Shown here one piece after another: positions 11,251-23,428 of a stretch of DNA of 64,000 nt (the stretch's first letter is position 1; each line of letters starts with the position of its first letter). The translations under genes were made by a program, and so were the position numbers. This stretch comes from Oculina patagonica (lineage: Eukaryota): NCBI RefSeq assembly GCF_052425735.1, contig NC_135770.1, positions 37,696,001 through 37,760,000 of the forward strand, in the 5' to 3' direction. The notes beneath the pieces are model-generated. The model was not told the DNA's origin, ran no database searches, and saw only the letters and a program-made list of their open reading frames with translations.

Positions 11251-11504
11251 ATGTGTTTATTTCTTTTTTAGTAGGTAGGGGGTCATCGCCGCCTTTGATC
11301 TAAATTGGTTCCTTCACACCCTCAAAACAATAACACTAGCCAATCGCCGCATTCACATCGGCGGGTCTCTTTGATCTAAATCTGATAACGCCGGCAACAT
11401 ATTGTCTTTTTTTCTTTGATCTAAATCGTCTTACATTGTTCTAAATTGTCTTAATTGGTTTAAAATCAATATGTCATTGACACGTATTTCACGCTCTAGT
11501 GCCA

Positions 11505-11705
11505 CTAGCTAAATAGTTAATTGAAGTCGCGGCTCATTAATTTTTTATTTTACGGCTGACTGCACCTAACGAAAGACTTAATTCAAGTCACGGTTCATTA
11601 ATGTTTTATTTTACGGCCGAGTGCACCTAGCTAAAGACTAAAATTGAAGTCACGGTTCATTAATTTTTTATTTTACGGCTGAGTGCACCTAGCGAAAGAC
11701 TTAAC
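11505..11705 (+). repeat. ~60-bp tandem repeat, about 3 copies, near the left end of the 12.2-kb element
   Basis: aattgaagtcacggttcattaattttttattttacggctgagtgcacctagc.aaagact repeated. Confidence 0.85.
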
Positions 11706-11949
11706 AATAGTCACGAGAAATACTTCACAGGGAAGTATTTGGTAGTTTTGTTTCAATTTTAAACGTTGCGCACGTCCTTCGTGAAACACATCTTTCCTGT
11801 ACAAAAAAAAACTTTACAATTTTTTTAACATTGAACTAGTGATCAGCACTCTGCGAACTGTAGTTGTAAAACAAACTTGTTTTATTCTCCTATGCGTTTC
11901 GTCCAACTGTCGCCTTCTTAGTAGTAAATCTGTGGTCCTGCGCCAAAGA

Positions 11950-18964: not shown

Positions 18965-19814
18965 CTAAGGCGCGCATTGCTCAAGTTGTCAGCAGTTGCC
19001 AGAAATTGAATACTTTAGCGTTTACGAGCATGCAAATGGTAAGAAGAAGCCAAATGAGAAGCATTCTAGCTGGGGAAAATTGCAAAAAACTACAGAACAT
19101 TATATGCGAGGATGTTACCGATTTTTACTTACGCCGACTTGTGGAGAAACTTCCAACTGCATCCACAGACGATAGAACTACGCCTGATGTCGAATTATTT
19201 GCCCCCATACCCACTGCCACTGCCAACCATATCGAAACTGGAGGAAATTGACGTACGCGTTGTACTTTATCAAAACCAACAAGAATATTAACATTAAATA
19301 ACACCGGATGGTTGAACTTTATGATAATTAAAAACGAGCAACCATTGACTGTTTCATCGCAACTATCAGCAAGAAAGTTACAACAGCGAGTAAGCATCAA
19401 ATTAGCACCTACTTAGCATCACATCTACGTGTGTGTCACCCCCACACTTAGGAAGTGAGCCGACTATAAGGAAGTGATTATGTTAAAAATGTGAAGTACG
19501 AGATTAAGATATCATTCCCTGATGAGTGTTTCTCGCTAGGGAGAATGACCCATTTCAAGTATGACATGCGTTAAGTATAAAATTGAAACAAAATTACCAA
19601 CTTTGTGGATAAAGATTAAAATGCGAGATCAAACCCTCTCTCTGATTGCCCTTGAAGTATTTCTCTTTCTAATGGTCGAGAGAAATGTGCGATTTCATGA
19701 AGGGCGTGCGCTGAGTATTGAAATTGAATTAAAACTACCGATTTTGCAGGCAGAGAGCATTTTGAAAATTGCACGATCATACACTCTATCCGTTTCAATG
19801 GCTTTTATAGGATG

Positions 19815-22390
19815 CTAGCCCACCCTTACTTTAAAGATCAAGAGCATTTAGGATATCTGAAGATCAAACAAAGTTTATTTTGCGCAGTAAAGCTGATTTC
19901 CGAGTTAGACCTGAGAGAAATGTGCCGACACGGTAAGGCCGTGCTTAATAGTTTTTTTTATGATGATACACCAACCTTAATTTGAAAGTTTTTATCCGAC
20001 TTAAACCTGAGAGAAATGCTCCGACGCGGTAAGGCCGTGATAAATGGGTATAATATGATGCCAAACTACCCTTACTTTAAAGGCCCAAAGCATTTTAGAT
20101 ATTCAAAGATCAAAGAAATTTTGTCTTGCGCAGTAAAGTTTATATCATACTAAAACCTAAAAGAAATGTTCGGACAAGGTTTTGCCGTGGGCAATGGGTA
20201 CAATATGATGCCAAACTACCCTTACTTTAAAGGTCAAGAGCGTGTTCAATTTTCAAAGATCAAACACGGTTTCTTTTGCCAGTTAACTTTTTATCCGACT
20301 TAAACGTGAGAGAAATGTTCCGACACGATTAAGCCGTGCTCCATGGGTTTTATATGATACCAAACATTTCCTCCTGCGCATTCAAGGTTTTATCCGACTT
20401 AAACCTGAGACCTTTAACCGTTACCTTTAAGTTCAAGAGTATTTTAGATATTTGAAGATCAAACAAAGTTTATTTTGCGCAGTAAAGCTAATTTCCAAGT
20501 TAGACCTGGGAGAAATGTGCCGACGCGGTAAGGCAGTGATAAATGGGTTTTATATGATGCCAACTAACCTTACCATTAAGTTCAAGAGCAAGTTAGATAT
20601 TTGAAGATCAAACACATTTCCTTTTGCGCATTCAAGTTTTTATCCGACTTAAACCTGAGAGAAATGCTCCGACGCGGTAAGGCCGTGATAAATGGGTATA
20701 ATATGTTGCCAAACTACCCTCACCTTTAAGTTCAAGAGCATTTTAGATATTTGGAGATCAAACAAAGTTTATTTTGCGCATTCAAGTTTTTATCCCACTT
20801 AAACCTGAGAGAAATGCTCCGACGGGGTAAGGCCGTGATAAATGGGTATAATATGATGCCAAACTACCCTTACCTTTAAGTTCAATAGCATTTTAGATAT
20901 TTAAAGATCAAACACATTTCTTTTTGCGCGTTCAAGTTTTTACCCGACTTAAACCTGAGAGAAATGCTCCGACGCGGTAAGGCCGTGATGAATGGGTTTT
21001 ATATGATGCAAAACTACCCTCACCTTTAAGTTCAAGAGCATGTTAGATATTTAAAGATCAAACACATTTCTTTTTGCGCATTCAAGTTTTTATCCGACTT
21101 AAACCTGAGAGAAATGCTCCGGCGCGGTAAGGCCGTGATAAATGGGTTTTATATGATGCCAAACTACCCTCACCTTTAAGTTCAAGAGCATGTTAGATAT
21201 TTAAAGATCAAATACATTTCCTTGTGCGCATTCAAGATTTTATCCGACTTAAACCTGAGAGAAATGCTCCGACGGGGTAAGGCCGTGATGAATGGGTTTT
21301 ATATGATGCCAAACTACCCTCACCTTTAAGTTCAAGAGCATGTTAGATATTTAAAGATCAAACACATTTTCTTTTTCGCATTCAAGTTTTTATCCGCCTT
21401 AAACCTGAGAGAAATGCTCCGACGCGGTAAGGGCGTCATAAATGGGTATAATATGATGCCAAACTACCCTCACCTTTAAGTTCAAGAGCATTTTAGATAT
21501 TTAAAGATCAAATACATTTCCTTTTGCGCATTCAAGTTTTTATCCGACTTAAACCTGAGAGAAATGCTCCGACGCGGTAAGGCCGTGATAAATGGGTATA
21601 ATATGTTGCCAAACTACCCTTACCTTTAAGTTCAAGAGCATTCTAGATATTTTAAGATCAAACACATTTTCTTTTGCGCATTCAAGTTTTTATCCAACTT
21701 AAACCTGAGAGAAATGCTTCGACGCGGTAAGGCCGTGATAAATTGGTTTTATATGATGCAAAAACTAACCTTTCCTCAAAGGTCAAGAGCATTCAAGTTT
21801 TTGAAGATCAAACAAAGTTTTTTTTGGATATTAAAATTTTTATACGACTTGAACCTGAGAGAAATGCTCCGATGCGGTAAGGGCGTGATAAATGGGGCTT
21901 ATATGATGCAAAACTAACCTTTCCTTAAAGGTCAAGAGCAAACACTGTTCCTTTAACGCAGTAAAGTTTTTATCCAACTTAAACCTTTGAGAAATGTTTT
22001 GCCGCTCAATGGGTTTTAAATTATGTTAAACCACCCTTTTATTAAAGGTCCAGAGCATTTTAGATATTTTACCGTTCAAACAATGTTTCTTTTGCGCAGT
22101 AAAGTTTTTATCCGACTTAAACCTGAGAGAAATGCTCCGACACGGTAAGACCGTGCTCAGTGGGTATTATATGATGCCGAAATACACTTACCTAAAAGGT
22201 CACGATCTATTTTTAATTTTCAAAGATCAAACACAGTTACTTTTCCTTGGGAATGCTTATATCCGTCTTACACATGAGGGAAGTGCACAGACATGGTTTG
22301 ACCGTGTTTTATGAGTTTTATTTTTATTTTTCGAAGATCAAAAGTTGCTTTTTACCGCAGTAAAGTTCATATCCGACAAAAACCCGGGAT
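19815..22390 (-). repeat. Satellite array, same 150-bp family in reverse orientation, roughly 16-17 copies (right arm)
   Basis: aacctgagagaaatgct recurs every 150 bp from ~20651 to ~21851; reverse complement of the left-arm monomer with its own diagnostic variants. Confidence 0.95.
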
Positions 22391-23428
22391 GTGATGGCAC
22401 AGTTTCCTTACGGCAAATGGTAGAGAGCGTTTTAAATATTTAAAAATTAATTCCAGTTTCTTTTGTCTATTGTATATAATATATCCACCTTACCTGTTTT
22501 TACATATACGGAACGATTAAGCTATGTTGTTTATCTAGACGTTTCTAAACTAAATGGCACCCTGTGTTAAACGGAGAAAAAATTATGCCGGCGAGACGGC
22601 TAGTGGTTTACCTTTTAATTGATTTTTGGAGATTTCTATTTTATAATGCTTAAGAACATACACATGTTATTCTCCCTTAAATTTAGTCGTAGCTGATTGC
22701 CGATGAACCCATGAAGTAAGACTCTAACACAGTTTTTTATGACCGGTTTCCTTTACTTTGGTGTTCTCTCACATAATTAACTTTTGCGTGACATTATTAC
22801 GTGACATCGCAACACGATGTATGGAATAATGTTACGGTTTCACATGGTTGCATTTAATGCCAGTTCAGACGTGAGCGCATTCGATTGCGTGCAGGCAGTA
22901 CTACAAAAGGTAGAACAGTATACGAAAAATTCAAGAGCTAAAGGGAGATGCGAGTAAAACGATTCCAAACCGCGTACATTTAAATAAAGGGTCGAAAGCA
23001 AAATCTTTTCATCATCAATTACAATTGCGCGTGCGTATTATTATAACGAAAAATGATTGGTTCTTGTGTTATGGCGGGAGATTCAAACAGCACCACAAGC
23101 CCGAAAAACAAATCGTCTATATAGCACAACAGCAGACTGTAGCGCCGATCCTTTCTGTGAGCGCAGAGGCGTTGTTTTCAAGCTACGCCAAGTGAGATAG
23201 GGTGACTGCAATGCTCTTTCCCTAACGCCTATCGGGCAAGGGTAATGTAGCATAAAGTCAATACCGGTTTAAGGCACGATTAAATCGCAGTCACGTGATT
23301 TTTGCACCAGTGCCTTTTTCAAGGTATTTTTCGGCCTTCTGGGCTTCGAAAAATAAATTTTGTATTTTTCGGAGCTTAGAAGAAGCTGAAAAAATCTCTC
23401 CTCCCTCCTTGGGGGGTCTGAAGAGAAT

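Follow-up and report, generated by a model that had tools for sequence, protein, structure and literature searches.

A probable Crypton-like transposon with satellite cargo in the coral Oculina patagonica

In a 64-kb stretch of Oculina patagonica chromosome CM126647.1 (hereafter the window; ~37.70 Mb, assembly GCA_052425735.1, no N), positions 11251-23425 hold a 12.2-kb insertion that we interpret, with a probability of roughly 0.7, as a copy of a Crypton-like tyrosine-recombinase (YR) DNA transposon that carries satellite as cargo. The Crypton features seen in it are a YR with the catalytic series R-K-HxxR-W-Y, the presence of the YR as sole enzyme, and the lack of terminal inverted repeats (TIRs) and long terminal repeats (LTRs). 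From left to right, the element consists of a 690-bp left end, a 6.0-kb satellite array (array A, +), a 1.9-kb core with the YR gene, a 2.7-kb inverted array (array B) and a 955-bp right end, with ~8 kb of 150-bp satellite in the two opposed arrays and ~4 kb of non-satellite unique DNA. No class of eukaryotic DNA transposons is less well understood than Cryptons; direct observation of activity is confined to Chlamydomonas, and in animals they have lacked a defined end structure. The Oculina element provides a Crypton-like unit with base-defined termini and distinct candidate binding repeats at each end.

Results

Paralogous empty sites define the insertion to the base

The flanks of the element belong to a tandemly duplicated cysteine-rich gene family (open reading frames, ORFs, of ~195-230 aa; ..CSLTSDPxNNYCTGMCGxxCxCWSWVCGDCC..) with repeated intergenic DNA around it, which accounts for the presence of empty sites in the same window. 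When the window was compared with itself by BLAST, 10482-11250 matched 42860-43620 at 92.4% and 23426-23668 matched 43618-43851 at 85.3%. Both flanks thus abut in the paralogue at 42860-43851, with a 3-nt overlap (AAT), and 11251-23425 is therefore an exact insertion with a 3-nt ambiguity. A second paralogue (28052-28618) crosses the insertion point uninterrupted, so that the clean insertion proposed for these positions by an earlier, sequence-only reading of the window was borne out to the base by two empty sites.

The filled site reads ...AAAAATAAT/ATGTGTTT...GAAGAGAAT/CAATTTT and the empty paralogue ...AAAATAAT/CAATTTT (slashes mark junctions); with other flanking lengths, the left junction is ...AAGCCATTAAAAATAAT/ATGTGTTTATTTC..., the right junction ...GGGGGGTCTGAAGAGAAT/CAATTTTATTCAGCC... 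and the paralogous empty site ...AAGCCATTTAAAATAAT/CAATTTTATTCAGCC.... AAT occurs once in the empty site and at both junctions of the filled site, a match only 3 nt long. Between the first and last 400 bp of the element, we found no inverted match of at least 9 nt and, A/T runs excepted, no direct match of at least 9 nt, which agrees with the earlier statement that only AAT is repeated at the junctions and that TIRs and LTRs are missing. Cryptons have neither TIRs nor long direct repeats, and animal Cryptons are without any terminal repeats (Kojima & Jurka 2011, PMC3212892), while the only active Crypton observed directly ends in CACCG, integrates at CAYCG and leaves the target on excision (PMC9977147). 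The assignment of Crypton-type termini was likewise supported by the lack of TIRs and LTRs, and the AAT common to one terminus and the target would fit it.

The core contains exons of a tyrosine recombinase

The last exon of the YR gene (exon 5, ...YTTHSSRHSHAKWARRCGADDTTIAEGGRWKDIQSMQRYMQGG...; motif string YTTHSSRHS...GRW...QRYMQ) by itself matched Pfam PF00589 (Phage_integrase) at E=6e-5, and a search with this exon yielded 67 relatives among 1.8 billion proteins. Its acceptor is tttctttcag, and the three introns have GT-AG borders and pyrimidine tracts and are all in phase 1. One cluster of relatives contained KAL9954717.1 (P0068), an annotated O. patagonica protein encoded by a second copy of the element, which scores 33.2 bits on PF00589 against a cutoff (Pfam gathering threshold) of 27.1. 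A profile built from 18 full-length relatives matched the C-terminal exon at E=7e-28 and the frame with the first catalytic arginine box (R-box, 18964-18779) at E=3e-6; with the same profile, a middle exon was matched at E=2e-6 in the second copy only. The catalytic residues R (LRREE), K (PKGK), HxxR, W and Y align, and the conserved C-terminal tail is common to the YR and to intronless metagenomic relatives of ~500 aa. The predicted fold of P0068 resembles Cre/Xer recombinases: for an AlphaFold 2 model with a predicted local distance difference test (pLDDT) score of 79.5, the best 23 fold matches in the PDB were all tyrosine recombinases (Cre, Tn1549 Int, XerH, XerA), with probabilities up to 0.99, but with E ~0.01 and template-modelling (TM) scores of ~0.45. 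A sequence search of the Porites relative P0079 against the PDB gave no significant match.

Six-frame profile scans of the whole element matched YR exons only and gave no Rep/helicase. No other Pfam domain was found in 10 ORFs of its unique regions, no Rfam family and no tRNA in the element, and reverse transcriptase (RT), RNase H and methyltransferase were absent from it, the ~4 kb of unique DNA leaving no room for them. An N-terminal YR domain was found neither in six frames of the whole element (tblastn with six relatives, the 18-relative profile, and phmmer with the Porites N-terminus) nor in the right end translated by eye.

Compared with the second copy, the window copy carries a 404-bp deletion at 18702-18707 in which the exon AISLTLW...FCLE is lost. 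Since the donor of the exon with the lysine box (K-box) and the acceptor of exon 4 outlast this deletion and are intact, splicing would remain in frame, minus 39 catalytic-domain residues. R-box and K-box lie in different frames in both copies, and a spliced frame joining the upstream ORF, the R-box and the K-box without a break was rejected, as GT-AG introns gave no in-frame solution. With an exon deleted and the frame broken, the window copy cannot make an intact recombinase, and both sequenced copies are probably non-autonomous because of the frame break between R-box and K-box and the N-terminal domain that was not found. The YR exons announced by the sequence-only reading (R...HxxR...W...Y) are thus present and match YR profiles, but they lie on the minus strand in a gene that is broken here; of its YR-driven element, the YR as sole recognisable protein stands, but the window copy is without an intact recombinase.

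A near-identical second copy lies at an unrelated locus

The gene for P0068 lies at 34.45 Mb on CM126647.1, 3.2 Mb away from the window copy, and the first 6.2 kb of the sequence that contains it (L002), with a CUB-domain gene, are unrelated to the flank in the window. Homology starts exactly at the right terminus of the element (...GGGGGGTCTGAAGAGAAT/GGTGCCGCTCG), where the L002 copy ends ...CTGAAGAGAAT with AAT last, as in the window, and it continues collinearly through the right end, array B, core, array A, island and array A again, up to the equivalent of window ~12086. Identity between the copies in unique segments amounts to 99.7% for the right end, 99.5% for the island and, within the core, 99.4% upstream and 100% downstream. 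Because the second copy is collinear and its unique segments are 99.4-100% identical, the composite must have moved or been copied as one piece very recently, after gaining the foreign island. These data supported the view that the element is one discrete mobile unit, since an unrelated second locus has the same right terminus, arrays, island and YR core in the same order; as for the co-occurrence of ends, arms and YR elsewhere, right end, arms and core were recovered at L002, but the left end has been seen at one locus only.

The copies also differ in their repetitive parts. The island is 534 bp shorter in the window than in L002, array B has 3 monomers more in the window, and array A of L002 holds two nested transposons that are absent from the window copy, namely a 1.9-kb insertion with 28-bp TIRs (CATGAGGGGACGCAGGCGGTGTCAACTG; L002:11816-13749) and a 1.2-kb insertion that starts with a ~130-bp palindrome (L002:13854-15059). 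Searches for further copies gave nothing new with P0068, P0001 and a satellite-encoded ORF at the protein level, 0 exact matches to a left-end 20-mer or a satellite 23-mer in metagenome contigs of the Joint Genome Institute (JGI), and no record in exact look-ups of two left-end ORFs, P0069 and P0007.

A diverged third sequence (Logan contig L001) is 94.6% identical, and its YR exons run into array A at the same junction. L001 and L002 diverge by 1.7% in exon 5, 2.7% in exon 4 and 5.2% in non-coding DNA, and their 12 coding differences in 417 bp comprise 9 synonymous and 3 non-synonymous changes, against an estimated ~3 synonymous ones in the absence of selection. As 9 of the 12 are synonymous, the comparison indicates purifying selection on the recombinase protein during the history of the family.

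Satellite arrays and unique ends

Tandem Repeats Finder (TRF) detected a period of 150 at 12077-17851, interrupted solely by a 603-bp non-satellite island (14101-14703), and the same period on the opposite strand at 19985-21940. Single-monomer BLAST widened the arrays to 11962-17926 (+) and 19797-22320 (-) and found no monomer in the remaining 52 kb of the window. The proposed ~6 kb of satellite is hence confirmed as array A, but the stretch includes a nested foreign fragment of 0.6 kb; the proposal that the same satellite is reversed beyond the core proved right. Among 33 + 12 full monomers extracted, those of one array were 83-84% identical to each other and 74% identical to those of the other array; arrays A and B are diverged subfamilies rather than a recent inverted duplication. 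Two blocks, GTTTGATCTTTAAATATCTAAAATG and CATTTCTCTCA.GTTTAAGTCGGATA.AAACTT, are near-invariant in both arrays despite 26% overall divergence, and the inner ends of both arrays have nearly identical monomer phase. What had been called long inverted arms are opposed in orientation as stated, but they are internal, 74% alike and of diverged subfamilies.

The island, whose counterpart is L002:18059-19203, contains part of an ORF (..YGISCRRCSTICIAETGRTLQQRFVE..HFNTNGH..). This ORF has no Pfam match and resembles, by eye, a GIY-YIG/Penelope-like 3' end.

Each unique end has short repeats of its own. With at most 1 mismatch, TTTGATCTAAAT has 3 matches in the 64 kb, all inside 133 bp of the left end; TATTTTTCGR occurs 4 times in the window, every time within the rightmost 1.1 kb of the element (0/100 shuffles reach 4), and the right-end hairpin that it forms has z = -4.6. 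Local alignment against shuffles revealed no significant similarity of the unique ends to the satellite monomer. A derivation of the termini from the satellite, considered for ATGTGTTT, which is common to the left terminus and the array-B consensus, was rejected, the alignment being not significant against shuffles. The end-specific short repeats are the most plausible candidates, better than the arrays, for putative binding sites of the recombinase or of accessory proteins.

Related recombinase genes in other cnidarians

The YRs of Porites (P0079), Pocillopora (P0099) and Nematostella (P0093) are 36-42% identical to the Oculina YR in the last exons, have the same C-terminal tail and are multi-exon. 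Unlike the Oculina element, these genes have nine exons over 7-10 kb and a clear N-terminal domain, and their arrays are 0.2-0.5 kb long, with units of 64 or 151 bp that are not related to the monomer in Oculina.

In Pocillopora meandrina, two copies of the YR unit (L005:3803-20899 and L006:3816-21131) are 98.8% alike over >17 kb and have a sharp left end starting GATAATGAACGATTATC; Porites evermanni (L003) and Pocillopora have the same left terminus and ~80% nucleotide identity in exons. This nine-exon family could be a large Crypton-like or horizontally moving element. The Pocillopora 64-bp tandem repeats are found within intron 1 of the YR gene and a second time ~7 kb downstream of it (L005:4764-4906 and 18258-18454; L006:4778-4920 and 18313-18835), and each repeat has a perfect 16-bp palindrome, ATTGCGTTAACGCAAT (a bZIP/C-EBP-like half-site pair); in Porites L003, a related repeat of 151 bp is located at 10887-11210 and 29883-30128. 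The idea that every member of this YR superfamily has flanking arrays was rejected, as short ones are present in Pocillopora and Porites and none at the Nematostella locus.

Nematostella vectensis has several YR loci on different chromosomes, and its C-terminal YR exon (P0093/P0007) is ~80% identical in protein to that of Porites (P0079). Such anemone-coral identity is unusually high for a transposon and suggests domestication or horizontal transfer.

Features of the element and the surrounding window

Table 1 Features of the element and its insertion site, in window coordinates
Feature	Position	Strand	Remarks
Cysteine-rich ORF family	8168-8758, 25238-25825, 35785-36375, 52962-53660, 58619-59290	-	
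AAT, target side of left junction	11248-11250	.	With 23423-23425, sole sequence repeated at both junctions
Left unique end	11251-11940	+	Without coding signal
3 exact direct copies of TTTGATCTAAAT	11294-11426	+	Starts 11294, 11370, 11415; candidate subterminal protein-binding sites
61-bp tandem repeat in left end	11498-11704	+	3.4 copies; TRF
Array A, outer part, 150-bp satellite	11941-14100	+	TRF, monomer BLAST
Non-satellite island nested in array A	14101-14703	-	ORF fragment, motif CxxC...IAETGRTLQQR; in both copies
Array A, inner part, 150-bp satellite	14704-17930	+	99.4% identical to L002:15060-18669
Unique core with YR gene	17931-19796	-	Transcribed right to left
AATAAA	18021-18026	-	~125 nt downstream of stop codon
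YR last exon (exon 5), including stop	18149-18378	-	HSSRHS (H-x-x-R), GRW, catalytic Y in QRYMQ, conserved C-terminal D.I.K.W...P tail
YR exon 4 (DGRALTVKDVSQIYQLIMGNAGINI)	18544-18618	-	AG acceptor, GT donor, phase 1
404-bp deletion junction, window copy only	18702-18707	-	39-aa exon AISLTLWENKLDRKLCPVTTLLTLLHLDKREAEPLFCLE lost; kept in L002:10681-10797 and L001
Open frame with beta-hairpin lysine box (IIPPFLEVLLPKGKTQDK)	18714-18831	-	Donor GT at 18713-18712; K-box 18715-18768
Open frame with first catalytic arginine box (ALRLWCMFLMMFALYLRREEV)	18779-18964	-	R-box 18797-18862; frame differs from adjoining K-box in both copies
Upstream 91-aa ORF	19128-19400	-	No Pfam match; KAL9954717.1 of second copy starts at equivalent of 19208
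Array B, inverted 150-bp satellite	19797-22470	-	Distinct subfamily (74% identical to array A); TRF, monomer BLAST
Right unique end	22471-23425	+	Without coding signal; 99.7% identical to L002:6232-7186
TATTTTTCGR x3 (2 direct, 1 inverted) forming 29-bp hairpin	23325-23392	+	35-100 bp from right terminus
Terminal AAT of element (...CTGAAGAGAAT)	23423-23425	.	Also last 3 bases of second copy
Paralogous empty site, AAT	43618-43620	.	Other empty site near 28562-28564 reads GAT

At the left of the window are two host genes, at 3-1442 and 4673-5788 (+), of the DC-STAMP type with a RING zinc finger and for TSEN34, a tRNA-splicing endonuclease subunit (Pfam families, L004). A (TTA)30 microsatellite (25124-25213), an ORF resembling a non-LTR reverse transcriptase (38195-38794, +) and two ORFs of ~190 aa (45761-48030, -) were also noted.

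Discussion

Crypton DNA transposons were reportedly described by Goodwin et al. in 2003, and under the Crypton model the recombinase would excise the unit as a circle with the junction ...GAAGAG-AAT-ATGTGT.... The AAT of the circle junction would recombine, at a presumed crossover point, with an AAT in an A/T-rich target, leaving an integrated copy bounded by AAT on both sides without a target-site duplication (TSD). Putative binding sites of the enzyme would be the subterminal repeats, TTTGATCTAAAT x3 on the left and the TATTTTTCGR x3 hairpin on the right. The arrays would be internal cargo that flanks the recombinase gene and is carried along at each move, most likely having grown by unequal exchange inside the element, and the window copy could now be moved only by a recombinase supplied in trans.

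We treat the arrays as cargo, most likely expanded inside the element, because of their internal position, their variable length and their divergence from each other. The sequence-only reading had instead offered the arms as possible platforms for recombinase binding or pairing, and this part found no support, given internal arrays that are 74% alike, a varying monomer number and termini with repeats of their own. Functional arms, serving transposition as recombinase-binding arrays or as an end-pairing platform, are accordingly an unlikely reading. The two near-invariant monomer blocks, the matching phase at the inner array ends and the Pocillopora 64-bp palindrome repeats on both sides of distantly related YR exons would speak for them, but the arrays are not at the termini, their monomer number differs between copies that are 99.4-100% identical, the unique terminal regions carry different repeats without monomer similarity, the related Nematostella locus has no arrays, and satellites commonly show uneven conservation within their monomers. 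It is similarly doubtful, if a shade less so, that a coral Crypton lineage made the arrays a working part, as iterated sites for recombinase or host factors that would synapse the ends or shield the element.

Several observations weigh against a Crypton-like transposon. The YR has no match to DUF3504, the hallmark of CryptonA (at E<=1, neither P0068 nor P0079 matched), an N-terminal core-binding domain could not be detected in the element, and with R-box and K-box out of frame in both copies no intact recombinase gene of the family was seen. The comparison covers two full copies, and the L002 sequence ends ~600 bp short of the expected left terminus, so that linkage of both ends is seen at one locus. 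A 3-nt junction identity would arise by chance with a probability of roughly 2-3%, and a hairpin near one end together with the lack of a TSD is also Helitron-like.

This last point leads to a reading that we regard as improbable, in which the unit would be a non-autonomous satellite carrier of the Helitron/Helentron type (like DINE-1/HINE), moved by a Rep/helicase encoded elsewhere, with the YR as a passenger that had invaded its satellite region or been captured by it. Satellite carriage is best documented for Helentrons, and such a carrier would fit an element that has no TSD and no TIR, whose insertion point may be read as either A^T or T^T, whose YR is broken in both copies and which has a strong hairpin at 35-100 bp from one of its ends. 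Its expected termini did not appear, however: 0/4 junction partitions give 5'-TC with 3'-CTRR, the sole TC start (minus strand) puts the hairpin at the 5' end and not at the 3' end, and there is no subterminal inverted repeat between the ends. No Rep/helicase remnant was found in the element, the YR exons evolve under purifying selection in linkage with the array, and the related Pocillopora YR also lies in a sharply bounded multi-copy unit.

A chance composite, in which a YR element nested between opposed satellite blocks was later copied 3.2 Mb away by segmental duplication, is very improbable: only two copies are known, both on one chromosome, and the nested island common to them means that the composite predates the copying, but the boundary of the empty site and the end of L002 homology coincide to the base, which disfavours a random duplication breakpoint, the diverged L001 shows a family older than the window/L002 pair, and no satellite occurs in the window's other 52 kb.

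For a Crypton-like transposon, the ~8 kb of non-coding cargo bears on how satellites spread to new sites and on the cargo capacity of eukaryotic YR systems. Because a near-identical second copy exists elsewhere on the chromosome, implying very recent movement at 99.4-100% identity, our results suggest that satellite DNA can be spread by this rare, Crypton-like kind of transposon. Should independent arrays of the satellite exist in the genome as well, its origin would be linked to a YR transposon, a kind of link documented so far for Helentrons, foldback elements and miniature inverted-repeat transposable elements (MITEs). If the arrays were in truth a working part, the element would seed a nucleosome-length satellite wherever it lands, an undescribed YR-driven route of satellite birth and dispersal.

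Full-text literature searches returned no Crypton or tyrosine recombinase with satellite or tandem repeats in this architecture, in line with the earlier reading, which did not recognise it as described; the known satellite-carrying transposons are Helentrons, foldback elements (e.g. Tetris, PMC4079207) and MITEs. DIRS1-like/Ngaro retrotransposons (PMC3266345) are, like the Oculina element, eukaryotic YR elements with inverted repeats in their architecture; the Oculina element is unlike them in having no RT, RNase H, methyltransferase, terminal inverted repeats or internal complementary region. Foldback transposons (FB, Galileo, Tetris; PMC4079207) likewise have inverted tandem-repeat arms around a unique centre, and these arms can seed satellites. 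Foldback arms are near-identical termini and go with a DDE transposase and a TSD, whereas the Oculina arms are internal, 74% alike and accompanied by a YR enzyme; the arrays stand 690 and 955 bp from the ends, with unrelated unique DNA between.

Helentron carriers (DINE-1/HINE, DINE-TR1 and oyster pearl/Cg170) resemble the Oculina element in having no TSD or TIR, ~150-bp tandem repeats and a hairpin near an end. Unlike them, it has no TC/CTRR termini and no subterminal inverted repeats, no Rep/helicase relative was seen, and its YR is under purifying selection. With Cryptons, the element has in common a YR as sole protein, an intron-interrupted gene, the lack of RT, LTR, TIR and TSD (PMC3212892), and the existence of non-autonomous or defective copies. 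A sequence shared between terminus and target is CACCG/CAYCG in CryptonF-1_cRei (PMC9977147) and would be AAT, only 3 nt long, in Oculina. Unlike CryptonA, the Oculina YR has no DUF3504 match; also unlike known Cryptons, the Oculina element has no detectable N-terminal YR domain, extends over 12.2 kb and carries ~8 kb of satellite in two opposed arrays around its recombinase gene.

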